From NCBI RefSeq assembly GCF_963921235.1, contig NC_086106.1, forward strand, positions 16,306,001-16,368,071: a stretch of 62,071 nt of DNA. The letters are read 5' to 3'. Source of the stretch: Mobula hypostoma. Its lineage: Eukaryota. This document shows, piece after piece, positions 12,212 through 58,780 of this stretch; position 1 is the stretch's first letter, and each line of letters starts with the position of its first letter. Made by a program: the position numbers and the translations under genes. Under the pieces are notes generated by a model. It did not search any database, was not told where the DNA came from, and saw only the letters and a list, made by a program, of their open reading frames with translations.

Positions 12212-12284
12212 CCTTTCCCAGTGTCTGCTGGGATCTTCTCCATCGGGATGTCCGTGTTTACCCAGAGAGAGTCTGGACTGGATC
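12212..12284 (-). CDS. Probable cytoplasmic exon of the Ig-like receptor (GSSPDSLWVNTDIPMEKIPADTGK...)
   Basis: Acceptor cccccacag| at 12286-12285 and donor |GTAAGT at 12211. The 73-nt exon is open in the phase-1 frame that follows the TM exon. It ends in phase 2; the next exon was not resolved. Confidence 0.6.
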
Positions 12285-12794: not shown

Positions 12795-12932
12795 CTCTCT
12801 TCCTCTGCCGACAGGTCGAGATGCCATGGAAAATGCACAGCACGATGCTAGTGTAGATCACCAGCGCAGCCACGGCAGCTGCAATCCACAGCCAGCTGAT
12901 CTTCCCGAGATACCAGGTCGGCTGGCAGGGTT
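12795..12932 (-). CDS. Connecting-peptide/transmembrane exon of the Ig-like receptor (EPCQPTWYLGKISWLWIAAAVAALVIYTSIVLCIFHGISTCRQRKR)
   Basis: Strong acceptor ttttctgtgtcctag| in phase 1, hydrophobic helix followed by basic stop-transfer RQRKR. Donor AG|GTTCGT is non-consensus; without splicing the frame runs to TAG at 12582-12580. Confidence 0.8.
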
Positions 12933-12959: not shown

Positions 12960-13590
12960 TAACCATGCACGGTGCTCCAGGAGTGGGTCCAACCCAGGGA
13001 TATAGAGACGGGAAGTGAGAACAGTGTTTCCCGGTGTGGGTCTGACCCAGGGATACGGAGATGGGAACTGTGCACGGTGCTCCCGGTGTGGGTCTGACCC
13101 GGGGATACAGAGACGGGAACCATGCACGGTGTTCCCGGTGTGGGTCTGACCCAGGGATACGGAGACGGGAACTGTGCACGGTGCTCCTGGTGTGGGTCTG
13201 ACCCAGGGATACGGAGACGGGAACCATGCACGGTGCTCCCGGTGTGGGTCTGACCCAGGGATACGGAGACGGGAACTGTGCACGGTGCTCCCGGTGTGGG
13301 TCTGACCCAGGGATACGGAGACGGGAACTGTGCATGGTGCTTCCGGTGTGGGTCTGACCCAGGGATACGGAGACGGGAACTGTGTGCGGTGCTTCCGGTG
13401 TGGGTCTGACCCAGGGATACGGAGACTGGAACTGTGCACGGAGCTCCCGGTGTGGGTCTGACCCAGGGATACGGAGACGGGAACTGTGCACGGAGCTCCC
13501 GGTGTGGGTCTGACCCAGGGATACGGAGACGGGAACTGTGCACGGTGCTCCCGGTGTGGGTCTGACCCAGGGATACGGAGACGGGAACGG
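12960..13590. repeat. 52-bp minisatellite family A (GGGTCTGACCCAGGGATACGGAGACGGGAACTGTGCACGGTGCTCCCGGTGT)
   Basis: About 12 direct tandem copies read directly. The same unit recurs at about 16480-16700, 18020-18500, 19830-20310 and 21300-22500. Confidence 0.95.
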
Positions 13591-14860: not shown

Positions 14861-15304
14861 CGGTTCGTCCATCGTCGTCGACAAAGACCCTCGACACCAT
14901 TCGTCACCTAGAGACTGTGTCGGGAGATGACTGGTCAGGAATGTCCTGGCACATGTTGGGCAGACATGTGTAGGCACTGCTACTGTTGCGCTGGTGGCTC
15001 TGGACTCGCGCAGTTCGCGCTTATGTTGTGTTTCAGCAGTGCGCCTTGGTCGTAAGCTTCACAGCCCTTGCGGATGAGGCCGCGCCAGGTAGGACGGTTT
15101 TGTGCCAGCGTTTCCCAAGAGCTCGTGTCTATGTCAAGCGACCTCAGGGAGGCCTTTAGTGCGTCTTTGTAACATTTCTTCTGCCCTCCATGCGAGCGTC
15201 TTCCAGCAGAGAGTTCCCCACAAAGGAGCTGCTCGGGTATGCGCTCGCCCAGCATGTGGATGACAGCGCCTTGTAAAAGCCATGAAAAAGACAACATCAC
15301 GAAC
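14860..15304 (-). mobile_element. RTE-clade LINE 3' fragment joined to the last C1 exon copy
   Basis: ERIPEQLLCGELSAGRRSHGGQKKCYKDALK...WETLAQNRPTWR, C-terminal CPTCARTF..SH knuckle and GACGACGATGGACGAAC tail. All are characteristic of RTE/BovB-type elements. Confidence 0.85.
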
Positions 15305-15554
15305 GCCCCCGAGCTCCAGAGTGATCGAGGGGTGTTCAGCGTGCTGATGGCGAGGTAGGTGCCCTCGGGGGTTCTCACCAGCTCCACGTTCCGCACTCCT
15401 GAGGTCACCGGCCTCCCCTCCACCTCCCAGCCGAAGGAGACCGATGCCGGGTAGAATCCGGTGGCCCCACAGGTGAGCGTGACGCTGGCTCCGTCCCCGG
15501 AGGGGGTCTCGGGGGTCCACAGCAAGAACGTGACTGGCGGCTGTGGGGCTGGAA
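15305..15554 (-). pseudogene. Truncated fifth copy of the tandem C1 exon (lacks F-strand Cys, G strand and donor)
   Basis: Intact acceptor cctctctctcag| and ~83 codons nearly identical to the other copies up to SLWSSGA, then RTE sequence. The missing 3' part was not found downstream. Confidence 0.88.
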
Positions 15555-15864
15555 CTGAGAGAGAGGATGCGGTCACGCATCAAACCGTGCCTGTCGTTCC
15601 CTGCGGGAGTGGGAATTCAGCCGGGGAGCAGAATCTATACAGGGACAGGGGTCGGGGAGTTGAGAGAGAGACTCAAAGACAGGGAGAGAGGTAGAGAAGG
15701 GAGGGGTCACATACACGAGGAATGGCAGAGGAGAGAGTCGGGGAGGAAGATGGGGAAGTGTGTTGGGGGGGAGCTTTCCTGGCACTTACCGACTGTTGTC
15801 AAGTCCATCTCCATGGATTCTGTTGTTAATGGTGTTGTTAAGGATTGGTGCGAGGCTGGAGAGG

Positions 15865-16395
15865 AGACACAATTATAGGAAAGATGTCAATAAAATAGAG
15901 AGAGTACAGAGAAGATTTACTAGAATGTTACCTGGGTTTCATCACCTAAGTTACAGAGAAAGGTTGAACAAGTTGGGTCTTTATTCTTTGGAACGTAGAA
16001 GGTTGAGGGGGGACTTGATACAGGTATTTAAAATTATGAGGGGGATAGATAGAGTTGACGTGGATAGGCTTTTTCCATTGAGACTGGGGGAGATTCAAAC
16101 AAGAGGACATGAGTTGAGAGTTAAAGGGCAAAAGTTTAGGGGTAAGATGAGGGGGATCTTCTTTACTCAGAGAGTGGTAGCTGTGTGGAACGAGCTTCCA
16201 GCAGAAGTGGTTGAAACAGGTTCGATGTTATCATTTAAAGTTAAATTGGACAGCTATATGGACAGGAAAGGAATGGAGGGTTATGGGCTGAGTGCAGGTC
16301 GGTGGGACTAGGTGGGAGTAAGAGTTCGGCACGGACTAGAAAGGCCGAGATGGCCTGTTTCCGTGCTGTAGTTGTTATATGGTTATATGGTTATA
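15865..16395 (+). mobile_element. 5'-truncated CR1 inside the duplicated C1 unit (identical insertion also at about 17410-17940 and 19213-19745)
   Basis: NYRKDVNKIERVQRRFTRML...YMDRKGMEGYGLS plus TTATATGG tail, with the same junctions in three units. The empty site GGAGACACACATGAC is at about 21222-21236. Confidence 0.92.
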
Positions 16396-16781
16396 CACAC
16401 ATGACTGGATCCCAATCTGGAACAGGAATATTCATCCACGTGTTACTCACTGGTTGTGCTGTAGGTTCCCTCACTGATCTGATGCGGGTCTGACCCAGGG
16501 ATATGGAGACAGGAATTGTGCAGGCTGCTCCCGGTGTGTGTCTGACCCAGGGATATGGAGACGGGAACTGTGCACGGTATTCCCAGTGTAGGTCAGGCAC
16601 ATGGAGTCGGAGATGGGAACTGTGTACAATGATCCCAGTGTGTGTCTGACCCTGGGATACAGAGACGGGAACTGTGCACGGTATTCCCAGTGCAGGTCAG
16701 ACAGGGATTCGGAGATGTATGTGAGCTGCTGATATGTGACAACCCCCACACTCCCCCCACCCCCTGCCTCAGCCCACTCAC

Positions 16782-17099
16782 CGTAGACGTCGATGTCCTT
16801 TCTGACGGGCTGATCCAGCTGCTGGTGGCTGATCAGACACGTGTGGCGAGCCCCCGAGCTCCAGAGTGATCGAGGGGTGTTCAGCGTGCTGATGGCGAGG
16901 TAGGTGCCCTCGGGGGTTCTCACCGGCTCCGTGTTCCGCACTCCTGAGGTCACCAGCCTCCCCTCCACCTCCCAGCCGAAGGAGACCAATGCCGGGTAGA
17001 ATCCGGTGGCCCCACAGGTGAGCGTGACGCTGGCTCCGTCCCCGGAGGGGGTCTCGGGGGGCTGCAGCAAGAACGTGACTGGCGGCTGTGGGGCTGGAA
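16782..17099 (-). CDS. Ig C1-set constant exon, tandem copy 4
   Basis: 318 nt, phase 1-1, ctctctcag| and |GTGAGT. VTLTC-GFYP-SFGW-GTYL-W-HTC-I-H motifs. Confidence 0.88.
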
Positions 17100-18585
17100 C
17101 TGAGAGAGAGGATGCGGTCACACATCAAACCGTGCCTGTCGTTCCCTGCGGGAGTGGGAATTCAGCCGGGGAGCAGAAACTATACAGGGACAGGGGTGGG
17201 GGAGTTGAGGGAGAGACTCAAAGACAGGGAGAGAGGTAGAGAAGGGAGGGGTCACATACACGAGGAATGGCGGAGGAGAGAGTCGGGGAGGAAGATGGGG
17301 AAGTGTGTTGGGGGGGAGCTTTCCTGGCACTTACCGACTGTTGTCAAGTCCATCTCCATGGATTCTGTTGTTAATGGTGTTGTTAAGGATTGGTGCGAGG
17401 CTGGAGAGGAGACACGATTATAGGAAAGATGTCAATAAAATAGAGAGAGTACAGAGAAGATTTACTAGAATGTCACCTGGGTTTCATCACCTAAGTTACA
17501 GAGAAAGGTTGAACAAGTTGGGTCTTTATTCTTTGGAACGTAGAAGGTTGAGGGGGGACTTGATAGAGGTATTTAAAATTATGAGGGGGATAGATAGAGT
17601 TGATGGGGATAGGCTTTTTCCATTGAGACTGGGGGAGATTCAAACAAGAGGACATGAGTTGAGAGTTAAAGGGCAAAAGTTTAGGGGTAACATGAGGGGG
17701 ATCTTCTTTACTCAGAGAGTGGTAGCTGTGTGGAACGAGCTTCCAGCAGAAGTGGTTGAGGCAGGTTCGATGTTGTCGTTTAAAGTTAAATTGGACAGCT
17801 ATATGGACAGGAAAGGAATGGAGGGTTATGGGCTGAGTGTAGGTAGGTGGGACTAGGTGGGAGTAAGAGTTCGGCACGGACTAGAAGGGCCGAGATGGCC
17901 TGTTTCCATGCTGTAGTTGTTATATGGTTATATGGTTTTGCACACATGACTGGATCCCAATCTGGAACAGGAATATTCATCCACGTGTTACTCACTGGTT
18001 GTGCTGTAGGTTCCCTCACTGATCCGATGTGGGTCTGACCCAGGGATATGGAGACAGGAACTGTGCAGGGTGCTCCCGGTGTGGGTCTGACCCAGGGATA
18101 CAGAGACAGGAACTATGCACGGTGCTCCCGGTGTGGACTGACTCAGGGATACGGAGATGGGAACTGTGCACGGTATTCCCAGTGTAGGTCAGACACAGGG
18201 AGTCGGAGATGGGAACTGTGTACAATGATTCCAGTGTGTGTCTGACCCTGGGATACGGAGATGGGAACAATGCACGGTGCTCCCGGTGTGGGTCTGACCC
18301 AGGGATATAGAGACGGGAACTGTGCACGGTGCTCCCGGTGTGGGTCTGACCCAGGGATACAGAGACAGGAACGGTGCACGGTATTCCCAGTGTAGGTCAG
18401 GCACAGGGAGTCGGAGACGGGAACTGTGTACAATGATCCCAGTGTGTGTCTGACCCTGGGATACAGAGACGGGAACTGTGCACGGTATTCCCAGTTCAGG
18501 TCAGACAGGGATTCGGAGATGTATGTGAGCTGCTGATATGTGACACCCCCCACACTCCCCCCAGCCCTTGCCTCAGCCCACTCAC

Positions 18586-18903
18586 CGTAGACGTCGATGT
18601 CCTTTCTGACGGGCTGATCCAGCTGCTGGTGGCTGATCAGACACGTGTGGCGAGCCCCCGAGCTCCAGAGTGATCGAGGGGTGTTCAGCGTGCTGATGGC
18701 GAGGTAGGTGCCGTCGGGGGTTCTCACCGGCTCCGTGTTCCGCACTCCTGAGGTCACCAGCCTCCCCTCCACCTCCCAGCCGAAGGAGACCAATGCCGGG
18801 TAGAATCCGGTGGCCCCACAGGTGAGCGTGACGCTGGCTCCGTCCCCGGAGGGGGTCTCGGGGGGCCGCAGCAAGAACGTGACTGGCGGCTGTGGGGCTG
18901 GAA
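18586..18903 (-). CDS. Ig C1-set constant exon, tandem copy 3
   Basis: 318 nt, phase 1-1, canonical splice sites, open frame, C1 motifs. Confidence 0.88.
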
Positions 18904-20390
18904 CTGAGAGAGAGGATGCGGTCACACATCAAACCGTGCCTGTCGTTCTCTGCGGGAGTGGGAATTCAGCCGGGGAGCAGAATCTATACAGGGACAGGGG
19001 TCGGGGAGTTGAGAGAGAGACTCAAAGACAGGGAGAGAGGTAGAGAAGGGAGGGGTCACATACACGAGGAATGGCGGAGGAGAGAGTCGGGGAGGAAGAT
19101 GGGGAAGTGTGTTGGGGGGGAGCTTTCCTGGCACTTACCGACTGTTGTCAAGTCCATCTCCATGGATTCTGTTGTTAATGGTGTTGTTAAGGATTGGTGC
19201 GAGGCTGGAGAGGAGACACGATTATAGGAAAGATGTCAATAAAATAGAGAGAGTACAGAGAAGATTTACTAGAATGTTACCTGGGTCTCATCACCTAAGT
19301 TACAGAGAAAGGTTGAACAAGTTGGGTCTTTATTCTTTGGAACGTAGAAGGTTGAGGGGGGACTTGATACAGGTATTTAAAATTATGAGGGGGATAGATA
19401 CAGTTGACGTGGATAGGCTTTTTCCATTGAGACTGGGGGAGATTCAAACAAGAGGACATGAGTTGAAAGTTAAAGGGCAAAAGTTTAGGGGTAAGATGAG
19501 GGGGATCTTCTTTACTCAGAGAGTGGTAGCTGTGTGGAACGAGCTTCCAGCAGAAGTGGTTGAAGCAGGTTCGATGTTGTCGTTTAAAGTTAAATTGGAC
19601 AGCTATATGGACAGGAAAGGAATGGAGGGTTATGGGCTGAGTGCAGGTCGGTGGGATTAGGTGAGAGTAAGCATTCGGCGCGGACTAGAAGGGCCGAGAT
19701 GGCCTGTTTCCATGCTGTAGTTGTTATATGGTTATATGGTTATACACACATGACTGGATCCCAATCTGGAACAGGAATATTCATCCACGTGTTACTCACT
19801 GGTTGTGCTGTAGGTTCCCTCACTGATCCGATGCGGGTCTGACCCAGGGATACGGAGACAGGAACTGTGCAGGGTGCTCCCGGTGTGTGTCTGACCCAGG
19901 GATACAGAGACAGGAACTATGAATGGTGCTCCCGGTGTGGGTCTGACCCAGGGATACGGAGATGGGAACTGTGCACGGTATTCCCAGTGTAGGTCAGACA
20001 CAGGGAGTCGGAGATGGGAACTGTGTACAATGATTCCAGTGTGTGTCTGACCCTGGGATACGGAGATGGGAACAATGCACGGTGCTCCCGGTGTGGGTCT
20101 GACCCAAGGATATGGAGACGGGAACTGTGCACGGTGCTCCCGGTGTGGGTCTGACCCAGGGATACAGAGACAGGAACGGTGCACGGTATTCCCAGTGTAG
20201 GTCAGGCACAGGGAGTCGGAGATGAGAACTGTGTACAATGATCCCAGTGTGTGTCTGACCCTGGGATACAGAGACGGGAACTGTGCACGGTATTCCCAGT
20301 GCAGGTCAGACAGGGATTCGGAGATGTATGTGAGCTGCTGATATGTGTCAACCCCCACACTCCCCCCACCCCCTGCCTAAGCCCACTCAC

Positions 20391-20708
20391 CGTAGACGTC
20401 GATGTCCTTTCTGACGGGCTGATCCAGCTGCTGGTGGCTGATCAGACACGTGTGGCGAGCCCCCGAGCTCCAGAGTGATCGAGGGGTGTTCAGCGTGCTG
20501 ATGGCGAGGTAGGTGCCCTCGGGGGTTCTCACCGGCTCCACGTTCCGCACTCCTGAGGTCACCGGCCTCCCCTCCACCTCCCAGCCGAAGGAGACCGATG
20601 CTGGGTAGAATCCGGTGGCCCCACAGGTGAGCGTGACGCTGGCTCCGTCCCCGGAGGGGGTCTCGGGGGGCCGCAGCAAGAACGTGACTGGCGGCTGTGG
20701 GGCTGGAA
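20391..20708 (-). CDS. Ig C1-set constant exon, tandem copy 2
   Basis: 318 nt, phase 1-1, canonical splice sites, open frame, C1 motifs. Confidence 0.88.
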
Positions 20709-21299
20709 CTGAGAGAGAGGATGCGGTCACACATCAAACCGTGCCTGTCGTTCCCTGCGGGAGTGGGAATTCAGCCGGGGAGCAGAAACTGCAGAGGGTC
20801 ACTGTGGAGAGGGAAGAGACTCAGAGACGGGGAGAGGTGTAGAGGAGGGAGGGGGCAGCATGGGAGTTGGTCGCGGAGCTGGGAAGGGGTGTTTGAATGC
20901 AAATGAATCACAGAGACAGGGAAGTGAGGAGGACACAGAGACAGGCATTGTGTAAGGGAAGGAGAAGATCATAGAGGTGGGGTGGGGGCATGGGTGAGGG
21001 AGAGGGTCTCTGAGATGGGGAGGGATGTTGGGGTGGGAATGCTTTCAAAGATGGGGAAGAGCTTAGGGGTGGGAGGGCATCATCGGGATAAGGATTTGTC
21101 GGGGAGGAAGATGGGGAAGTGTGTGGGGGGAGCTTTCCTGGCACTTACCAACTGTTGTTGAGTCCATCACCATGGATTCTGTTGTTAATGGTGTTGTTAA
21201 GGATTGGTGCGAGGCTGGAGAGGAGACACACATGACCGGATCCCAATCTGGAACAGGAATATTCATCCAAATATTACTGACTGGTTGTGCTGTAGGTTT

Positions 21300-22500
21300 C
21301 CTCACTGATCTGGTGTGGGTCTGACCCAGGGATACGGAAACAGGAAATGTGCACGATGCTCCCGGTGTGGGTCTGACCCAGGGATATGGAGACGGGAACT
21401 GTGCACAGTGTTCCCGGTGTGGGTCTGACCCAGGGATATGGAGACGGGAACTGTGCACAGTGTTCCCGGTGTGGGTCTGACCCAGGGATATGGAGACGGG
21501 AACTGTGCGCAGTGTTCCCGGTGTGGGTCTGACCCAGGGATACGGAAACAGGAACTGTGCACGGTGCTCCCGGTGTGGGTCTGACCCAGGGATACCAAGA
21601 CGGGAACTGCGCACGGTGCTCCCGGTGTGGGTCTGACCCAGGGATACGGAGACAGGAACTGTGCACGGTGCTCCCGGTGTGGGTCTGACCCAGGGATACG
21701 GAGACGGGAACAGTGCACGGTGCTCCCGGTGTGGGTCTGACCCAGGGATAGGGAGACGGGAACTGTGCACAGTGCTCCTGGTGTGGGTCTGACCCAGGGA
21801 TACGGAGACGGGAACTGTGCACGGTGCTCCCGGTGTGGGTCTGACCCAGGGATACGGAGACGGGAACTGTGCACGGTGCTCCCGGTGTGGGTCTGACCCA
21901 GGGATACGGAAACGGGAACTGTGCACGGTGCTCCCGGTGTGGGCCTGACCCAGGGATATGGAGATGAGAACTGTGCACAACGTTCCCGGTGTGTGTCTGA
22001 CCCAGGGATACGGAGACGGGAACTATGCAGGGTTTTTCTGTTGTGGGTCTGACCCAGGGATAGAGACCAGAACTGTGCATGGTTTGGGTCTGACTCTGGG
22101 ATACGGAGACGGAAACTGGGCACGGTGCTCCTGGTGTGGGTCTGACCCAGGGATACGGAGACAGGAAATGTGCACGGTGCTCCCGGTGTGGGTCTGACCC
22201 AGGGATATGGAGACGGGAACTGTGCACGGTGTTCCCGCTGTGTGTCTGACCCAGGGATACGGAGACGGGAACTATGTAGGGTGCTTCTGTTGTGGGTCTG
22301 ACCCAGGGATACGGAGATGGGAACTCTGCACGGTGTTCCCGGTGTGGGTCTCTCCCAGGGATACCAAGACGGGAACTGTGCACGGTGCTCCCAGTGTGGG
22401 TCTGACCCAGGGATACGGAGATGGGAACTGTGCATGGTTTGGGTCTGACCCTGGGATACAGAGACGGGAACTGTGCACGGTATTCCCAGTGCAGGTCAGA
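21300..22500. repeat. 52-bp minisatellite family A, largest C-region array
   Basis: About 22 tandem units; source of the spurious 305-548 aa ORFs. Confidence 0.95.
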
Positions 22501-22580
22501 CAGGGATTCGGAGATGTATGTGAGCTGCTGATATGTGACAACCCCCACACTCCCCCCACCCCCTGCCTCAGCCCACTCAC

Positions 22581-22898
22581 CGTAGACGTCGATGTCCTTT
22601 CTGACAGGCTGATCCAGCTGCTGGTGGCTGATCAGACACGTGTAGCGAGCCCCCGAGCTCCAGAGTGATCGAGGGGTGTTCAGCGTGCTGATGGCGAGGT
22701 AGGTGCCCTCGGGGGTTCTCACCGGCTCCACGTTCCGCACTCCTGAGGTCACCGGCCTCCCCTCCACCTCCCAGCCGAAGGAGACCGATGCCGGGTAGAA
22801 TCCGGTGGCCCCACAGGTGAGCGTGATGCTGGCTCCGTCCCCGGAGGGGGTCTCGGGGGGCCGCAGCAAGAACGTGACTGGCGGCTGTGGGGCTGGAA
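22581..22898 (-). CDS. Ig C1-set constant exon, tandem copy 1 (VPAPQPPVTFLL...ITLTCGATGFYPASVSFGW...GTYLAISTL...WSSGARYTCLISH...DIDVY)
   Basis: 318 nt, phase 1-1, canonical splice sites. The only copy with an intact Y-x-C in the F strand. Confidence 0.92.
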
Positions 22899-23724: not shown

Positions 23725-24036
23725 CAGCATTTCTCTGGAACACACTGACGATGGGTGTGTCTCTGGAGACGTGCGTGACCAGGCAGTAAACGCTCCCGAC
23801 CCGGTCCCACTCCGGGAGCGGGATGTGTATCTGACTGCTGGCGCTGTAGGTCCCGCTGCTGCTCCTGACGGGGCCGTCCTGCTCCGTGGGCAGGGAGTGC
23901 GATTTTCTGTCCACCATCCACCGGAAGGTGATGCTCTCGGGGTAGAACCCCACCGCCTTGCAGATGAGCGTCGCCCTCGCTGACCAGACCACCCCCCCCT
24001 GGAAAGGGGCCTGCAGCCGCACGTCGGGAGACCGCA
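23725..24036 (-). CDS. First Ig C1-set constant exon (MRSPDVRL...ATLICKAVGFYPESITFRW...GTYSASSQI...EW...VYCLVTH...QRNA)
   Basis: 312 nt, phase 1-1, acceptor ttccctccag|, donor |GTAAGA, canonical C1 Cys-Trp-Cys and GFYP motifs. Confidence 0.92.
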
Positions 24037-41689: not shown

Positions 41690-42660
41690 TTCAGTGCTGG
41701 GACCGCAGCTATTTACAATATACATTAATGATGTAGATGAAGGGATTAAATGTAACATTAGCAAATTTGCAGATGACACAAAGCTGGGTGGCAGTGTGAA
41801 ATGTGAGGAGGATGTTATGAGAATGCAGGGTGACTTGGACAGGTTGGGTGAGTGGGCAGATGCAGTTTAATGAGGATAAATTTGAGGTTATCCACTTTGG
41901 TGGCAAGAACGGGAAGGCAGATTACTATCTGAATGGTGTCAAGTTAGGAAAAGGGGAAGTACAATGAGATCTAGGTGTCCTTGTTCATCAGTCACTGAAA
42001 GTAAGCATGCAGGTACAGCAGGCAGTGAAGAAAGCTAATGTCGGCCTTCATAACAAGGGGAGTTGAGTATAGGAGCAAAGAGGTCCTTCTGCAGCTGTAC
42101 AGGGCCCTGGTGAGACCACACCTGGAGTATTGTGTACAGTTTTTGTGTCCAAATTTGAGGAAGGACATTCTTGCTATCGAGGGAGTGCAGCGTAGGTTCA
42201 TGAGGTTAATTCCCGGGATGGCGGAACTGTCATATGTTGAAAGATTGGAGCGACAGGGCTTGTATACACTGGAATTTAGGGGGATGAGAGGGTATCTGAT
42301 ATAAGATTATTAAGGGATTGGACACGCTAGAGGCAGGAAGCATGTTCCCGATGTTGGGGGAGTCCAGAACCAGAGGCCACAGTTTAAGAATAAGGGGTAG
42401 ACAATTTAGAACGGAGTTGAGGAAAAACTTTTTCACCCAGAGGGTTGTGGTTCTGTGGAATGCTCTGCCTCAGAAGACAGTGGAGGCCAATTCTCTGGAT
42501 TCTTTCAAAAAAGAGTTAGATAGAGCTCTTAAAGATAGCGGAGCGAAGGGATATGGGGATAAGGCAGGAACTGGATACTGATTGTGGATGATCAGCCGTG
42601 ATCACAGTGAATGGCGGTGCTGGCTCGAAGGGCCGAGTGGCCTACTCCTGCACCTATTGT
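41690..42660 (+). mobile_element. CR1 LINE 3' part abutting the V-exon donor
   Basis: KFADDTKLGG, RPHLEYCVQF, RKNFFTQRVV motifs. The tail ends about 40 bp from the V-exon donor. Confidence 0.88.
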
Positions 42661-42701
42661 CTAATGTCAAACGCGGCAATGTGTGGAGACACTGGACTCA
42701 C

Positions 42702-43085
42702 TGCGCTCGACGGAGAGGGAGATCCCGCAGCCACACCAGTCCGTGGCGTTGACGTCCCAGAGGTTGTCGGTAATCTGGCAGAAGTAGCGGCTGGTGTCGA
42801 TGGACATGGCACGGTTGATCTGCAAGGACATGGTCCCGCGGCGGATGTCCTTGCGGGCCAGGTAACGGTCGCTGCTCCCGGCGGGGTATATGGGCTGTTG
42901 GGAGCCGGGCTCCCAGTACAGCAGTTTCTTGAGGCCTCCTCCCCCACCGGGAGGCACGTACAACCACAGGAAGTACCGGTTGTCATGCTGGTAGGAAAAC
43001 CGACATTGCAGGGACACCGGAGAGCCCTCAGTGGCCACCATCTTTGCCGAGGACACGCGGAAGTTGGTTCCAGCCAAGCAGGAGC
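42702..43085 (-). CDS. Ig V-set exon with germline-joined J-like FR4 (non-rearranging VJ)
   Basis: 384 nt, phase 1-1, acceptor tctccctag|, donor A|GTGAGT. SLQC...FLW...DRY...MSLQI...DTSRYFC-CDR3-WCGCGISLSVE; Cys-Cys spacing 75. Confidence 0.93.
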
Positions 43086-43121
43086 CTAGGGAGATTTTTT
43101 TAAAAATGGAGTGGTCAGCAT

Positions 43122-44160
43122 CAGTTCCCGTCTCCGTATCCCTGGGTCAGACCCACACCGGGAGCATGATCACCGTGCACAGTTCCCGTCTCCGTATCCC
43201 TGGGTCAGACTCACACCGGGAGCATGATCACCGCGCACAGTTCCCGTCTCCGTATCCCTGGGTCAGACCCACACCGGGAGCATGATCACCGCACACAGTT
43301 CCCGTCTCCGTATCCCTGGGTCAGACTCACACCGGGAGCATGATCACCACACACAGTTCCCGTCTCCGTATCCCTGGGTCAGACCCACACCGGGAGCACC
43401 GCACACAGTTCCCGTCTCCGTATCCCTGGGTCAGACCCACACCGGGAGCACCGCACACAGTTCCCGTCTCCGTATCCCTGGGTCAGACCCACACCGGGAG
43501 GACCGTGCACAGTTCCTGTCTCCATATCCCTGGGTCAGACCCACACCAGGAGGACCGTGCACAGTTCCCGTCTCCGTATCCCTGGGTCAGACCCACACCG
43601 GGAGCACCGCGCACAGTTCCCGTCTCCGTATCCCTGGGTCAGACCCACACCGGGAGCACCGCGCACAGTTCCCGTCTCCGTATCCCTGGGTCAGACCCAC
43701 ACCGGGAGCACCGCGCACAGTTCCCGTCTCCGTGTCCCTGGGTCAGACCCACACCGGGAGCATGATCACCGCGCACAGTTCCCGTCTCCGTATCCCTGGG
43801 CCAGACCCACACCGGGAGCACCGCGCACAGTTCCCGTCTCCATATCCCTGGGTCAGACCACACCGGGAGCATGATCACCACACACAGTTCCCGTCTCCGT
43901 ATCCCTGGGTCAGACCCACACCGGGAGGACCGTGCACAGTTCCTGTCTCCATATCCCTGAGTCAGACCCACACCAGGAGAACCGTGCACAGTTCCCGTCT
44001 CCGTATCCCTGGGTCAGACCCACACCGGGAGCACCGCGCACAGTTCCCGTCTCCGTATCCCTGGGTCAGACCCACACCGGGAGCACCGCGCACAGTTCCC
44101 GTCTCCGTATCCCTGGGTCAGACCCACACCGGGAGCACCATGCACAGTTCCCGTCTCTGG
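43122..44160. repeat. 52-bp family A array (some 60-bp variants) in the leader-V intron, inverted relative to the C-region arrays
   Basis: Unit GGGTCAGACCCACACCGGGAGCACCGYGCACAGTTCCCGTCTCCGTATCCCT is the reverse complement of the 12960-13590 unit. Confidence 0.95.
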
Positions 44161-44208: not shown

Positions 44209-44254
44209 CAGCAAAGAGGAGAAGGAGCTGGATCTGAACGATATTTGACACCAT
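44209..44254 (-). CDS. Leader (signal peptide) exon of the Ig-like receptor, MVSNIVQIQLLLLFA-G
   Basis: Strong Kozak CCAGCATGG, hydrophobic core, 46 nt ending G|GTAAGG (phase 1). Splices in frame to GC-SCLA|GTNF of the V exon, the typical split-leader layout of Ig/TCR V genes. Confidence 0.88.
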
Positions 44255-44460
44255 GCTGGTGGGAAGGGTTTCTGTGTGTCAGAGCCCCAGGAACATGGCA
44301 CTGCCTGATGATAGCTGACAGACAACTGTGCTCTGAGAGCACTTTTGCGATGTGGACTCTCGCTCTGAGTCATCCAGGAAACACTGGGAGCTGACATGGC
44401 ACAAAAGAGAAGAGGGAGCACAAGACTCTTGGGATGGGTCAAATGGGGATTCCTTCGTGT

Positions 44461-46165
44461 CAGACCCTGAGAGTGTGTGATGGGACGGTGTGGAGGGAGA
44501 TACACTCTGTGTCTGACCCCGGGAGTGTGTGATGGGACAATGTGGAGGGAGTTTCACTCTGTGTCTGACCCCGGGAGTGTGTGATGGGACGGTGTGGAGG
44601 GAGCCTCACTCTGTGTCTGACCCAGGGAGCGTGTGATGGGACGGTGTGGAGGGAGATTCACTCTGTGTCTGACCCTGAGTGTGTCTGATGGGACGGTGTG
44701 GAGGGAGTTTCACTCTGTGTCTGAACCCGGGAGTGTGTGATAGGACGGTGTGGAGGGAGGTTCACTCTGCGTCTGACCCTGGGAGTGTGTGATGGGACGG
44801 TGTGGACGGAGATTCACTCTGTTTTGGACTCCGGGAGTGTGTGATGGGACGGTGTGGAGGGAGCTTCACTCTGTGTCTGAACCCGGGAGTGTGTGATGGG
44901 ACGGTGTGGAGGGAGTTTCACTCTGTCTGACCCCGGGAATGTGCGATGGGATGGTGTGGAGGGAGATTCACTCTGTGTCGGAATCCAGGAGTGTGTGATG
45001 GGACGGTATGGAGGGAGCTTCACTCTGTGACTGACCAAGGGAGTGTGTGATGGGACGGTGTGGAGGGAGATTCAATCTGTGTCTGACCTTGAGTGTGTCT
45101 GATGGGACGGTGTGGAGGGAGTATCACTCTGTGTCTGAACCCAGGAGTGTGTGATGGGACGGTGTGGAGGGAGCTTCACTCTGTGTCTGACCCCGGGAGT
45201 GTGTGATGGGACGGTGTGGAGGGAGTTTCACTCTGTGTCCGACCCCGGGAGTGTGTGATGGGACGGTGTGGAGGGAGTTTCGCTCTGTGTCTGACCCCGG
45301 GAATGCGTGATGGGATGGTGTGGAGGGAGAATCACTCTGTGTTGGAATCCAGGAGTGTGTGATGGGACGGTATGGAGGGAGCTTCACTCTGTGTCTGACC
45401 CCGGGTGTGTGTGATGGGACGGTGTGGAGGGAGATTCACTCTGTGTCTGACCCTGAGTGTGTCTGATGGGACTGTGTAGAGGGAGTATCACTCTGTGTCT
45501 GAACCCGGGAGTGTGTGATGGGACGGTGTGGAGGGAGGTTCACTCTGTGTCTGACCCCGGGAATGTGTGGTGGGATGGTGTGGACGGAGATTCACTCTGT
45601 GTCTGACTCCGGGAGTGTGTGATGGGACGGTGTGGAGGGAGATTCACTCTGTGTTGGAATCCGGGAGTGTGTGATGGGACGGTATGGAGGGAGCTTCACT
45701 CTGTGTCTGACCCCGGGAGTGTGTGATGGGACGGTGTGGAGGGAGATTCACTCTGTGTCTGACCCTGGGAGTGTCTGATGGGATGGTGTGGAGGGAGCTT
45801 CACTCTGTGTCTGACCCCAGGAGTGTGTGATGGGACGGTGTGGAGGGAGTTTCACTGTGTTTCTGACCCCGGGAGGGAGTGATGGGAAGGTGTGGAGGGA
45901 GTTTCACTCTGTGTCTGACCCCGGGAGTGTGTGATGGGACGGTGTGGAGGGAGTTTCACTGTGTGTCTGACCCCGGGAGGGAGTGATGGGAAGGTGTGGA
46001 GGGAGTTTCACTCTGTGTCTGACCCCGGGAGTGTGTGATGGGACAGTGTGGAGGGAGTTTCACTCTGTGTCTGACCCCGGGAGTGTGTGATGGGATGGTG
46101 TGGAGGGAGTTTCCCTCTGTGTCTGACCCCCGGAGGGAGTGATGGGATGGTGTGGAGGGAGAGTT
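44461..46165. repeat. 52-bp minisatellite family B (GGGAGTGTGTGATGGGACGGTGTGGAGGGAGTTTCACTCTGTGTCTGACCCC)
   Basis: About 32 tandem units filling most of the intergenic gap between the two genes. Confidence 0.96.
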
Positions 46166-46410
46166 ACATTTTGAAGACTATTGAGAACAGGAATTTCACA
46201 GTGGACGTCCATACCCTGAGGAGTGTTGTAGAAAAGGGAGACCTGGGGGTTGGTTTGGCACATGGGTTGGCATGGGGCAGGAGGGCCGAATGGCTTGCGG
46301 TTGTTTTGTTGTGATGTGGGGTGTGGGCGGAGCAAACACTGTCAATCAACTGATGGAAGAGTGACAGCTGTCAGTACTGGGGGTTGGTCAATGAGCTGTC
46401 CGTCAGAGGA

Positions 46411-46440
46411 GTAGGCGGGCCTCCGGGCGGAAGTGGTGCA
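46411..46440 (+). promoter_or_regulatory. Probable METTL3 core promoter elements: GC box and ETS/GABP-type site
   Basis: GGGCGG at 46425-46430 overlaps CGGAAGTG at 46428-46435, about 75 bp upstream of the ATG in a CpG-rich patch. No TATA box seen. Confidence 0.5.
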
Positions 46441-46508
46441 CCGGGCCTACCGTTCGCTTTGCAGCCTCGGGCTCGAGTTGTGGCTACGGCCCGGAGCCCG
46501 GAACCAAG

Positions 46509-46599
46509 ATGTCAGACACGTGGAGCGACATCCAGGCCCACAAGAAGCAGCTACACAGTCTGAGGGAGAGGCTGCAGCGGAGGCGGAGGGAGCCAGGCG
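46509..46599 (+). CDS. METTL3: METTL3 (m6A methyltransferase catalytic subunit) coding exon 1
   Basis: MSDTWSDIQAHKKQLHSLRERLQRRRR closely matches the vertebrate METTL3 N-terminus; donor G|GTGAGG, phase 1. Confidence 0.96.
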
Positions 46600-48720
46600 G
46601 TGAGGGGAAGGGGAAGGGGCTGGGGAAAGGGAAGTTAAAGGGGAGGGGAGGTGGAGATGTAGGGGTGGGTCGGGGTTTGGATTGGAGGGGAGGGGCATGT
46701 AGCTGGTGGACAGTGGAAAGGGAGGGGCAGGGGAGGGGAGGAAAAGGTGTAGGGAGAGGGGTGTGGGTGTGGGTTAAGAAGGAAGGGGATAGGGGTAGTT
46801 TGAGGGGGAGGGGGAGAGGGATGAGGAAGGGGGTTGAAGGGTAGGGGTGGAGTTGAGAGGGAGGGAATGGGGCAGGGGGTTTGAGGGGGAGGGGGATTGG
46901 GCCGTTGGGGGTTGAGGTAGAATTTGAGGTGGGAAGGGGATTGCCAAGGGGAGTTCAAGGGTGATGGGGTCCAGGGGGGGTTTAAGGGGGATGGGGCAGT
47001 GGGGGGGTTGAGAGGGAGTTTGAGGTGGGTGGGGGATGGGGCCAAGGGAGTTTAAGGGTGATGGGGGCCAGGGGGGTTTAAGGGGTAGGGGGTTGAGGGG
47101 GAGTTTGAGGTGGGTGGGGGATGGGGCCAAGGGAGTTTAAGGGTGATGGGGGCCAGGGGGGGTTTAAGGTGATGGGGCAGTGGGGGGGTTGAGGGGGAGT
47201 TTGATGTGGGTGGGGGATGGGGCCAAGGGAGTTTAAGGGTGATGAGGGCCGGGGGGGGTTAAGGGGGATGGGGCAGTGGGGGGGTTGAGGGGGAGTTTGA
47301 GGTGGGTGGGGGATGGGGCCAGGGGAGTTTAAGGGTGATGGGGGCTGGGGGGTTTAAGCAGGGGGAGGGTGTTGAGGGGGAGTTTGAGGTGGGTGGGGGA
47401 TGGGGCCAGGGGAGTTTAAGGGTGATGGGGGCTGGGAGGTTTAAGGCGGGGAGGGGGTTGAGGGGGAGTTTGAGGTGGGTGGGGGATGGGGCCGGGGAGT
47501 TTAAGGGTGATGGGGGCTGGGTGGTTTAACGGGGGGGAGGGGGTTGAGGGGCAGTTTGAGGTGGGTTGGGGATGGGGCCAGGAGAGTTTAAGGGTGATGG
47601 GGGCTGGGGGGTTTAAGGGGGAGGGGGAGGGGTTTAAGGGGGAGGGGAGGGGGTTGAGGGGGAGTTTGAGGTGGGAGGGGGATGGGGCCAAGGGAGTTTA
47701 AGGGTGATGAGGGCCGGGGGGGTTAAGGGGGATGGGGCAGTGGGGGGGTTGAGGGGGAGTTTGAGGTGGGTGGGGGATGGGGCCAGGGGAGTTTAAGGGT
47801 GATGAGGGCCAGGGGGGGTTTAAGGGGGATGGGGCAGTGGGGGGGTTGAGGGGGAGTTTGAGGTGGGTGGGGGATGGGGCCAAGGGAGTTTAAGGGTGAT
47901 GAGGGCCGGGGGGGTTAAGGGGGATGGGGCAGTGGGGGGGTTGAGGGGGAGTTTGAGGTGGGTGGGGGATGGGGCCAGGGGAGTTTAAGGGTGATGGGGG
48001 CTGGGGGGTTTAAGGGGTAGGGGGAGGGGGTTGAGGGGGAGTTTGAGGTGGGTGGGGGATGGGGCCAAGGGAGTTTAAGGGTGATGAGGGCCGGGGGGGG
48101 GTTAAGGGGGATGGGGCAGTGGGGGGGTTGAGGGGGAGTTTGAGGTGGGTGGGGGATGGGGCCAGGGGAATTTAAGGGTGGTGGGGGCCAGGGGGGGTTT
48201 AAGGGGGATGGGGCAGTGGGGGGTTGAGGGGGAGTTTGAGGTGGGTGGGGGATGGGGTCAAGGGAGTTTAAGGGTGATGGGGGCCAGGGGGTTTAAGGGG
48301 GATGGGGCAGTGGGGGGGTTGAGGGGGAGTTTGAGGTGGCAGTGGGAAGGGGCAAGGGGAGTTTAAGGGTGATGGGGGCTGGGGAGTGGGGTTGAGGGGG
48401 AGTTTGAGGTGGGAGGGGGATGGGGCAAGCAGAGTTTGAGGTGGGAGTGGGAAGGGGATGGGGCAGGGGGAGATTGGGGTGGGAGGGGTGAGGTGGATCG
48501 GGGTGGTGAGAGGTTATAGGGTACAGGGGGTGGTGGGAGGGTGTAGATGGAGGTTCATTGGGGGGTTTGTTGGAGGATGGGGGGAGGGTTGATGGGAAGG
48601 GGGTGGTGAGGGGGAGAGGGACGGGAGTGATGAAACTGGAGCAGAGCCAGTTTGGGGGTGGAATTAGGCAGGATGCAAGAGAGGTTGGTCGGGTGAGGCT
48701 GTTTGAAGGGAAGGGAATGA
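46600..48720 (+). repeat. G-rich tandem repeat (about 80-95 bp unit, GAGTTTGAGGTGGGTGGGGGATGGGGCC...GAGTTTAAGGG) in METTL3 intron 1
   Basis: Continuous G3-G8 runs on one strand over about 2 kb. Confidence 0.93.
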
Positions 48721-53744: not shown

Positions 53745-53953
53745 CCCAGACGGAGACTGCTCAGGGGGTAGGTGCAGGCCTGCGTAGTGACAGCCCAGTC
53801 CCGCCGGCTGCCCTACCACCCACCAAACCGAGTGGCCTGGACCAGGACGAGAAGATTGACCCCCTCCTCGAGAGGCGGCTGCTCGAGCACCTCTCCAACC
53901 AGGCTCTGCTTCTGCCCACCGACTCACTTGCCATCCAGAACGCCTTGTTGTCG
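53745..53953 (+). CDS. METTL3: METTL3 exon 2
   Basis: ctccacag| ... |GTGAGA, 209 nt, phase 1-0. RSDSPVP...DPLLERRLLEHLSNQALLLPTDS corresponds to human RSDSPVP...DPELEKKLLHHLSDLALTLPTD. Confidence 0.93.
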
Positions 53954-53974: not shown

Positions 53975-54900
53975 TGCCACTGAGTCGGGCACAGGGTGAG
54001 ACTCCCTCCACACCGTCCCATCACACACAGGCTGAGACTCCCTCCACACCGTCCCATCACACACTCCTGGGGTCAGACACAGAGTGAAACTCCCTCCACA
54101 CCGTCCCATCACACACTCCCGGGGTCAGACACAGAGTGAGACTCCCTCCACACCATCCCATCACATACTCCCGAGGTCAGACACAGAGTGAATTTCCCTC
54201 CACACCGTCCCATCACACACTCGTGGGGTCAGACACAGAGTGAATTTCCCTCCACACCGTCCCATCACACACTCCTGGGGTCAGACACAGAGTGAATTTC
54301 CCTCCACACCGTCCCATCACACACTCGTGGGGTCAGACACAGCGTGAAGCTTCCTCCACACCGTCCCATCAGACACTCCCAGGGTCAGACACAGAGTGAA
54401 TCTCCCTCCACACCGTCCCATCATACACTCCCGGGGTCAGACACAGAGTGAATCTCCCTCCAGACTGTCCCATCACACACTCCCGGGGTCAGACACAGAG
54501 TAAAACTCCCTCCACACCGTCCCATCACACACTCCCGGGGTCAGACACAGAGTGAGACTCCCTCCACACCGTCCCATCACACACAGGCTGAGGCTCCCTA
54601 CGTACCATTCTATCACACACTCCCGGGCTCAGACACAGAGTAAAACTCCCTCCACAGCGTCCCATCACACACTCCCGGGGTCAGACACAGAGTGAAACTC
54701 CCTCCACACCGTCCCATCACACACTCCCGGGGTCAGACACAGAGTGAAACTCCCTCCACACCGTCCCATCACACACTCCCGGGGTCAGACACAGATTGAA
54801 GCTCCCTCAACTCCGTCTCATCACACACCCCGAGGTCACACAGAGAGTGAAACTCCCTCCATACTGTCGCATCGCACACTTCCGGGGTCAGACATCCCAT
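53975..54900. repeat. 52-bp family B array in METTL3 intron 2, inverted relative to 44461-46165
   Basis: Unit GGGGTCAGACACAGAGTGAAACTCCCTCCACACCGTCCCATCACACACTCCC. Confidence 0.95.
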
Positions 54901-56385: not shown

Positions 56386-56751
56386 CTCCAGTGCTCGGTG
56401 ACCCAGGGGAATGTGGAGAGCCTACTGCAGAAGTTTGCGGCCCAGGAGTTGATTGAGGTGCGAGGGGGCCTGTCCCAGGACGGCAGGCCGACCACCGTCA
56501 CCTTCGCCGACCACACCAAGCTCTCGGCCATGCTAGTGCTCCTGCCCCAGGAGGGCGAGCAGCCCCTGCCGCAGGCCGAGGGGGGCCAGAAGAGGCGGGC
56601 CCAGCCCCCGCCGGTCGGATCCGCCCCCTCCCCGCCCGACAGGAAGCTCCCCGAGCCTGCCAAGAAGTCCCGCAAGGTGGCCTCCGAACTGGACCTGGAG
56701 ATCGAGAGGCTGCTGAACCAGCAGTCCACCAAGGAGAGGCAGAGCAAGAAG
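56386..56751 (+). CDS. METTL3: METTL3 exon 3
   Basis: TQGNVESLLQKFAAQELIEV...ADHTKLSAM...AKKSRK...DLEIERLLNQQSTKERQSKK|GTACGG. The acceptor could alternatively be the in-frame one at 56392. Confidence 0.94.
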
Positions 56752-57140: not shown

Positions 57141-57316
57141 GTGAGCCAGGAGATCCTGGAGCTGCTGAACACCAGCACAGCGAAGGAGCAGTCGATGGTG
57201 GAGAAGTTCCGGTCCCGCGGCCGCGCCCAGGTGCAGGAGTTCTGCGACCACGGCACCAAGCTCGAGTGTATGAGGGCCCAGGACCTGGAGCGGCCCTGCC
57301 GCAAACTCCACTTCAG
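57141..57316 (+). CDS. METTL3: METTL3 exon 4 (CCCH zinc finger 1)
   Basis: VSQEILELLNTSTAKEQSMVEKFRSRGRAQVQEFCDHGTKLECMRAQDLERPCRKLHF; 176 nt, phase 0-2. Confidence 0.96.
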
Positions 57317-57690
57317 GTGGGGGCAGTGTGGTCGGGGAATGATGGGGGGGGGTGAGGGAGAGAGGGGAAGTGTATACGAGGGCCCAGGGCCTGTTGGAGG
57401 GGGGCCCTGCCGCAAACTCCACTTCAGGTGGGGGCACTGTGGTCGGGGAATGATGGAGGGCGGGGTGAGGGAGAGAGGGGAAGTGTATACGAGGGCCCAG
57501 GGCCTGTTGGAGGGGGGTCCTGCCGCAAACTCCACTTCAGGTGGGGACGGGGGTGACATAGTGAGGGGCTGAAGGAAGAGAGGGCAGGACAAGGAGAATA
57601 GGAGGACTGCGGGATTATGATTGAAGTAGGCGATGTTTATGAGAGCCCAGATCCTGGAGCAGCCCTACCACAAGCTTCACTTCAGGTGGG
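57317..57690 (+). repeat. Tandem duplications of the METTL3 exon 4 3' end and donor
   Basis: CC(C)TGCCGCAAACTCCACTTCAG|GTGGG recurs exactly with GT at 57428 and 57541, and a diverged copy has GT at 57686. Confidence 0.9.
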
Positions 57691-58566: not shown

Positions 58567-58780
58567 GCGCATCATCAACAAGCACACAGACGAGTCTCTG
58601 GGTGACTGCTCCTTCCTCAACACCTGCTTCCACATGGACACCTGCAAGTACGTGCACTACGAGATCGACAGCTGCCTGGACACCGGCCCAGTTCTGCCCC
58701 TGGATGGCCAGGGGTCCGACAAGCCCCTCACCCCCAGTGTGGGCACTGACCCCAGCCTGGGCAAGCTCTTCCCCCCACAG
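58567..58780 (+). CDS. METTL3: METTL3 exon 5 (CCCH zinc finger 2); later exons not found in the window
   Basis: [34 protein letters not shown]...LFPPQ|GTGTGC; 214 nt, phase 2-0. Confidence 0.96.

Follow-up and report, generated by a model that had tools for sequence, protein, structure and literature searches.

A gene for a receptor of the immunoglobulin (Ig) superfamily lies head-to-head with METTL3 in the genome of the ray Mobula hypostoma, and its sequence identifies it as the M. hypostoma orthologue of UrIg2, of the batoid type. The DNA analyzed here, called the window in the following, comprises 62,071 nt (positions 16,306,001 to 16,368,071 of contig NC_086106.1, RefSeq assembly GCF_963921235.1), and coordinates within the locus refer to it. 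UrIg2 was described as a non-rearranging elasmobranch gene with a split leader and a single exon for the joined variable and joining (VJ) parts (Flajnik, Stanfield … Ohta, Sci Adv 2025, PMC12227049; PDB 9dmx; nurse shark sequence PQ663719). Taken as a whole, we consider the following explanation very probable: a UrIg2 orthologue is located between PNP and METTL3, it is transcribed from a promoter separate from that of METTL3, its product has the innate role that we infer below, and the minisatellite dispersed through the locus has no special function.

The divergent UrIg2-METTL3 gene pair

The leader ATG of the receptor gene at position 44254 on the minus strand and the METTL3 ATG at position 46509 on the plus strand are divergent and have 2,254 bp between them. 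The public annotation of GCA_963921235.1 contains the same divergent pair with 2,254 bases between the genes. The first coding exon of METTL3 opens with MSDTWSDIQAHKKQLHSLRERLQRRRREPG and is followed by a GT donor after position 46599, and the leader exon of the receptor gene (46 nt) opens with MVSNIVQIQLLLLFAG and is followed by a gtaagg donor after position 44209. An earlier sequence-only reading of this DNA had described the head-to-head layout with the same two ATGs, and the ends of the region it singled out, 44209 and 46599, are exactly the ends of the two first exons. It had also assigned about 1.7 kb of the gap to one minisatellite, for which Tandem Repeats Finder (TRF) returned a single array of 1,706 bp at 44457-46162.

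Both genes were confirmed independently by spliced models that agree with annotated M. hypostoma proteins without a single mismatch. Thirteen minus-strand exons, all with AG/GT boundaries, encode residues 1-840 of the 842-residue protein XP_062916119, the last two codons falling outside the window, and METTL3 exons 1-5 encode residues 1-352 of M. hypostoma METTL3. The adjacency, its positions and its numbers as originally observed are thus confirmed.

Identity of the receptor gene

When the V exon was compared with all chains in the PDB, the top match was 9dmx, annotated as 'UrIg2 V-C1-C2-C3' (E 1e-39 to 1e-40), and the next-best match was an antibody V domain (E 2.8e-9). The alignment with the V domain of nurse-shark UrIg2 in 9dmx (E 1.2e-39) contains 65 identical residues out of 123 (53%). 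Kept in it are the motif FCQxTDNL, an NxT site in the loop resembling complementarity-determining region 3 (CDR3), and a Cys-x-Cys-Gly in the G strand, where WCGCG of the ray V aligns with FCSCG of 9dmx. For the two types of constant-domain exon of the gene, termed Ca and Cb, the best PDB match was likewise 9dmx. The homologue from the sawfish Pristis pectinata (XP_051865846.1) could be aligned exon by exon, with 55% identity in V and 62% in Cb, and this accession stands in the UrIg2 list of the authors who described the gene (Flajnik et al., Sci Adv 2025, PMC12227049). The identity of the V domain to those of other rays ranges from 55% (sawfish) to 83% (red stingray).

No heptamer was present inside the VJ exon or abutting it, and no nonamer was found at 42601-43200 around this exon. 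A lone CACTGTG located 93 bp into the intron by the VJ exon sits in repeat-like sequence resembling a transposon. A cryptic recombination signal sequence (RSS) was rejected. The assignment to UrIg2 is based on the V match to 9dmx, the presence of the sawfish homologue on the authors' list, the batoid exon layout and the lack of an RSS. The gene has the split leader, the single-exon VJ, repeated C1-set exons, hinge exons, and a transmembrane region with a short tail that characterize UrIg2. Of the VJ-C1 gene proposed from the sequence alone, the non-rearranging VJ was retained, and the simple VJ-C1 architecture gave way to one with five C1-set exons, four hinge exons, a transmembrane exon and a cytoplasmic exon.

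Cartilaginous fish carry germline-joined Ig genes, and the receptor gene might be one of these, a light-chain cluster gene, or another VJ-type receptor of the Ig superfamily (NCR3-like or SIRP-like) instead of UrIg2. RefSeq calls its orthologues 'immunoglobulin mu / alpha-2 / gamma-1 heavy chain-like', and the constant domains match those of IgM and IgA strongly, after 9dmx. However, the V match to UrIg2 is 30 orders of magnitude better than that to any antibody V, the repeated constant and hinge modules with a transmembrane exon correspond to the published batoid UrIg2 layout, and the sawfish orthologue was itself called UrIg2 by the authors (PMC12227049). We therefore regard such an identity as extremely unlikely. 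A rearranging or germline-joined gene of an Ig or T-cell receptor (TCR) cluster was also rejected, because an RSS is lacking and the layout is unlike that of IgM, IgW, IgNAR and IgL.

The gene was also compared with UrIg, the paralogue linked to class III of the major histocompatibility complex (MHC), which also combines a non-rearranging VJ with several C1-type domains and was reported to form a homodimer and to be expressed outside lymphocytes (PMC12227049). The V domain of UrIg shows about 80% conservation across species, but its identity to the UrIg2 V is only 28-32% (PMC12227049). Since the V domain encoded in the window is 53% identical to shark UrIg2, and since the Mobula gene, unlike UrIg, adjoins METTL3 and PNP and not the MHC, it is unlikely to be UrIg.

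Several observations nevertheless weigh against the assignment to UrIg2. The choice of UrIg2 over UrIg rests on the V identity of 53% and the location outside the MHC, with UrIg compared by its published figures only. The hinges of the Mobula gene are Ser/Thr-rich and contain only one to three prolines each, whereas batoid hinges were called proline-rich (PMC12227049). Furthermore, batoids were reported to have lost the shark C1 domain (PMC12227049), and in pairwise scores Ca matched nurse-shark C1 with 48.7 bits, C2 with 31.4 bits and C3 with 19.5 bits.

Exon organization of UrIg2

The positions of the exons and of the other features of the window are listed in Table 1. The annotated UrIg2 gene spans 56,038 bp and reaches beyond the window, with its last coding exon some 11.8 kb ahead of position 1. 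In RefSeq, the proteins XP_062916119/20 carry the label 'uncharacterized protein LOC134352673'. A domain search with one constant-region exon led to an 842-residue protein of Mobula birostris and to homologues from P. pectinata and Hemitrygon akajei, and XP_062916119/20 fall into the same 90%-identity cluster as the M. birostris protein.

Table 1. Features of the UrIg2-METTL3 locus in the 62,071-nt window.
Feature	Position	Strand	Evidence
UrIg2 leader exon 1, phase-1 split leader, 46 nt	44209-44254	-	ATG and gtaagg donor; spliced model
UrIg2 VJ exon, germline-joined, J-like G strand WCGCGISLSVE	42702-43085	-	Pfam V-set E 6.7e-10; PDB 9dmx
UrIg2 first C1-set exon (Ca), unique	23725-24036	-	Pfam C1-set E 3.3e-12; 9dmx E 1.5e-27
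Four Cb C1-set and hinge cassettes	15790-22898	-	Pfam C1-set E 7.9e-18; tblastn; ag/gt boundaries; splice model
Exon Cb1	22898-22581	-	
Exon Cb2	20708-20391	-	
Exon Cb3	18903-18586	-	
Exon Cb4	17099-16782	-	
Hinge exons after Cb1-Cb4	21247-21149, 19204-19139, 17400-17335, 15855-15790	-	99, 66, 66, 66 nt
Fifth Cb copy, truncated pseudo-exon	15304-15556	-	tblastn match ends at 15304; sequence diverges there
UrIg2 transmembrane exon (…ISWLWIAAAVAALVIYTSIVLCIF HGISTCRQRKR)	12795-12932	-	splice model; 24-residue hydrophobic stretch in translation
UrIg2 cytoplasmic exon (GSSPDSLWVNTDIPMEKIPADTGK)	12212-12284	-	splice model
Unique 202 bp 5' of the UrIg2 ATG, presumed 5' untranslated region (UTR) and core promoter	44255-44456	-	CpG observed/expected 0.15; motif scan
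52-bp minisatellite type B, 1,706 bp	44457-46162	.	TRF: period 52, 32.8 copies, 87% matches, score 2586
52-bp minisatellite type A, fills the UrIg2 leader intron	43122-44157	.	TRF: 19 copies, score 1531
METTL3 upstream region and 5' UTR, 346 bp	46163-46508	+	CpG observed/expected 0.63 (window 0.44)
METTL3 exon 1	46509-46599	+	spliced translation
METTL3 exons 2-5	53745-53953, 56386-56751, 57141-57316, 58567-58780	+	spliced translation

At the protein level, pairwise identity among the four Cb exons is 91-99%. The fifth Cb copy is cut after WSSGA by unrelated sequence, has no splice donor and is skipped in the annotated protein. As it is truncated and donorless, and as the model without it equals XP_062916119, we regard it as a pseudo-exon.

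The published UrIg2 genes have many C1-type domains, some of them near-identical through duplication and gene conversion, and a transmembrane/cytoplasmic region, with hinge exons specific to batoids (PMC12227049). M. hypostoma is not among the species covered in that study. Its gene resembles nurse-shark UrIg2 in the split leader, the single-exon non-rearranging VJ, the V domain, the Cys-x-Cys and the N-glycosylation site in CDR3. It also shares with published UrIg2 the many C1-set domains with near-identical tandem copies, the transmembrane region with a short tail, and the batoid hinge exons. In contrast to shark UrIg2, in which a C2/C3 pair is repeated, the Mobula gene has one unique constant exon followed by four repeats of a single constant exon with its hinge, and it differs further by the truncated fifth copy.

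Proposed protein and function

According to the gene model, UrIg2 of M. hypostoma would be a type I membrane glycoprotein. Its VJ domain, joined in the germline, would carry the glycosylated loop resembling CDR3 and the G-strand Cys-x-Cys. Next would come a single unique C1-set domain and four near-identical ones that are each followed by a Ser/Thr-rich hinge, and then a transmembrane helix and a predicted cytoplasmic tail of about 37 residues without signalling motifs. Nurse-shark UrIg2 forms a homodimer via the A and G strands of its V domain with two non-canonical disulfides in the G strand (PMC12227049). By analogy with this crystallised protein, the Mobula receptor would most likely be a disulfide-linked homodimer joined through the A and G strands of V, and its stalk of repeated constant and hinge modules would hold the V domain far from the membrane. 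In the nurse shark, UrIg2 is expressed in liver and gill and not in lymphocytes (PMC12227049). Judged from the nurse-shark protein (PMC12227049), Mobula UrIg2 would be a germline-encoded innate binder or adhesion molecule and not a lymphocyte antigen receptor.

Intergenic region, minisatellites and METTL3

The 202 bp of unique sequence in front of the UrIg2 ATG contain one TGACTCA, and a motif scan of 44255-44456 detected neither a TATA box nor an Ig octamer. Upstream of METTL3, GC boxes are present at 46325 and 46425 and a CGGAAG ETS core at 46428. The sequence features suggest that the two genes have separate promoters, of which that of UrIg2 appears to be CpG-poor and that of METTL3 to be a housekeeping-type promoter with GC boxes and an ETS site. 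A shared bidirectional promoter was rejected because the ATGs are 2,254 bp apart, the CpG observed/expected ratios of the two regions differ (0.15 vs. 0.63), and a minisatellite lies between them.

This type B minisatellite makes up 76% of the intergenic gap. Intron 2 of METTL3 contains an inverted array of its unit at 54021-54894. The 52-bp unit of type A, which fills the leader intron at 43122-44157, is related to it and is found in inverted orientation at 12966-13588, 18028-18495, 19835-20324 and 21312-22514; it also fills the introns after each Cb exon. The intergenic array was rejected as a special element because its unit is present again, in the opposite orientation, within METTL3 intron 2 and relatives occur in the leader and constant-region introns; the 52-bp minisatellite is dispersed through the locus without an evident special role. 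The arrays at 44457-46162 and 54021-54894, inverted relative to each other and 7.9 kb apart, bracket METTL3 exons 1 and 2.

METTL3 was named on the basis of 846 METTL3 matches to a profile incorporating the exons of the window, and the M. hypostoma protein XP_062916121 belongs to the METTL3 cluster. The annotated gene is 44.5 kb long, and the exons for the catalytic MT-A70 domain lie past the window end. Two repeat tracts within the gene were also observed. The tract at 57292-57546, which starts inside the 3' end of exon 4, contains 2.3 copies of a 113-bp unit (97% matches). The exon end 'PCRKLHFR' with its GT donor thus occurs in two to three tandem copies, which represent possible alternative 5' splice sites. 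At 46890-48384, at the start of intron 1, a G-rich minisatellite with a unit of about 96 bp is present in about 16 copies on the coding strand. The GC skew reaches 0.71 in the 46-48 kb bin, and this tract, just downstream of the promoter, is a candidate G-quadruplex former.

Conservation of the gene neighbourhood in rays

In the M. hypostoma annotation, PNP is followed after 4.5 kb by UrIg2, which is oriented in minus direction relative to METTL3, and after a further 2,254 bp by METTL3. In M. birostris, the distance between PNP and the 3' end of UrIg2 is likewise 4.5 kb. A further point against our interpretation comes from this species, in which an unplaced 247-kb scaffold carries all that is annotated of METTL3, a fragment of 257 residues, so that the tight junction is seen in one assembly. 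The assembly of M. birostris was probably interrupted in the 5' part of METTL3, which is rich in minisatellites. In that assembly (GCA_030028105.1), the METTL3 fragment is C-terminal, and UrIg2 and PNP are located on a 148.7-Mb chromosome.

In the red stingray H. akajei, consecutive accessions on one 62.8-Mb chromosome belong to METTL3 (XP_072885326/7) and to two UrIg2-like genes, one with products of up to 1,044 residues (XP_072885328-32) and the other represented by XP_072885333. The consecutive numbering suggests that METTL3 and the UrIg2-like genes are neighbours, at a distance of more than 10 kb. An SLC12 transporter gene is located 9.9 kb downstream of METTL3. The two UrIg2-like genes are arranged in tandem on the same strand in this assembly (GCA_048418815.1), and the larger one (32.7 kb) is nested in a gene model on the opposite strand that exceeds 52 kb but has a product of only 106 residues.

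A different arrangement was found in the electric ray Narcine bancroftii (CM072946.1), in which the upstream neighbour of METTL3 is PNP, oriented in the same direction and ending 5.8 kb away, and the downstream neighbour is an SLC12 transporter gene at 6.9 kb. No UrIg2-like or other Ig-superfamily sequence was detected in the 44,065-bp PNP-METTL3-SLC12 segment of this species. In Hypanus sabinus, no gene was called within 10 kb of METTL3, and in Pristis, where UrIg2 lies on an unplaced scaffold of 44 kb, the 10 kb on its 5' side did not contain METTL3 exon 1; neither result speaks for or against the adjacency. When the V region of a UrIg2 homologue served as query in a word-indexed search, only ray proteins and no shark orthologue were returned.

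The abundance of minisatellites raises the question of whether the junction in Mobula is an assembly artefact, i.e., a false join through dispersed 52-bp units. The array accounts for 76% of the gap, about ten further sites in the window carry related arrays, and METTL3 of M. birostris is fragmentary and unplaced. On the other hand, the window contains no N, and unique sequence flanks the array on both sides. In Narcine, PNP directly adjoins METTL3 and has the same orientation, which argues that the Mobula join is real and not chimaeric, and METTL3 and the UrIg2-like genes have consecutive accessions in H. akajei. An artefact is hardly credible in the light of these data.

With the junction taken as real, the adjacency of UrIg2 and METTL3 appears to be common to stingray-type rays and to be missing in an electric ray. 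H. akajei appears to keep UrIg2 by METTL3, but Narcine has no UrIg2 there, and the tight adjacency is therefore not general among batoids.

Comparison with the TCR alpha/delta locus of other vertebrates

On the 5' side of METTL3, the human genome carries SALL2, followed by the TRAV genes. METTL3, SALL2, DAD1 and ABHD4 flank the TCR alpha/delta locus (TRA/TRD) in coelacanth, Xenopus, alligators, birds and mammals (PMC12698447, PMC2275272, PMC12529555). The earlier statement that METTL3 and SALL2 mark this flank in mammals is therefore documented, and from coelacanth to amniotes. Rays resemble tetrapods and coelacanth in that a V-bearing gene of the antigen-receptor family is found on the 5' side of METTL3. 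In contrast to that flank, neither SALL2 nor TOX4, both of which the sequence-only reading had suggested looking for, is present within 10 kb of METTL3 in rays, where this gene is flanked by PNP or UrIg2 and by an SLC12 transporter gene. The micro-synteny of tetrapods around METTL3 is not kept in rays.

UrIg2 was reported to be linked to IgM, IgW, IgNAR and TCR alpha/delta, with the linkage shown for a stingray and three sharks, and was assigned to the chromosome-14 paralogon (PMC12227049). The human orthologues of both PNP and METTL3 are located at 14q11.2, which fits this assignment. The idea of a possible relic of the ancestral antigen-receptor locus, which had been put forward from the sequence alone, is supported by the identity of the gene as UrIg2, because UrIg2 has already been argued in print to be a non-rearranging relic linked to IgH and TCR alpha/delta (PMC12227049; print July 2025).

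The position directly beside METTL3 could be a derived, lineage-specific trait, UrIg2 having moved or been duplicated into the PNP-METTL3 interval within the Myliobatiformes. This would agree with the situation in Narcine, where PNP and METTL3 are 5.8 kb apart and 44 kb are free of UrIg2-like sequence. It would also agree with the published description of the UrIg2 region as 'malleable', with a structure and copy number that are highly plastic (PMC12227049), and with the two copies in H. akajei and the several in the Atlantic stingray (PMC12227049). A loss of UrIg2 in Narcine, however, explains the data equally well, and the neighbourhood is common to two families of Myliobatiformes, the Mobulidae and probably the Dasyatidae. 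Moreover, PNP, METTL3, TRA/TRD and PSMB5 are all located at human 14q11.2, so UrIg2 lies in the right paralogon either way. We regard a derived placement as a serious possibility that falls just short of being probable; if it applies, the adjacency is uninformative as to where the ancestral antigen-receptor gene was located.

Alternatively, the slot directly 5' of METTL3 may be ancestral for jawed vertebrates. The METTL3 border at the V end of TRA/TRD in coelacanth, frogs and amniotes would then be the border of the VJ gene that existed before RAG, UrIg2 of stingray-type rays would have stayed in place, and the rearranging arrays would have been moved off by an inversion. We consider this scenario unlikely.

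Significance

The notion of UrIg2 as a relic is not new (PMC12227049), and the evolutionary gain of the present analysis is incremental. What is new is the identity given to the unnamed LOC134352673, an exon map of a batoid UrIg2 gene that is complete to the last two codons, and the anchoring of the gene by PNP and METTL3, neither of which is named in the main text of the published study (PMC12227049). Also new is the evidence for the adjacency of UrIg2 and METTL3 within stingray-type rays and for its absence in an electric ray. UrIg2 is at present the leading candidate for the kind of gene in which the RAG transposon split the V exon. As conserved single-copy anchors, PNP and METTL3 simplify asking in sharks, skates and chimaeras whether the position of UrIg2 is ancestral or mobile.

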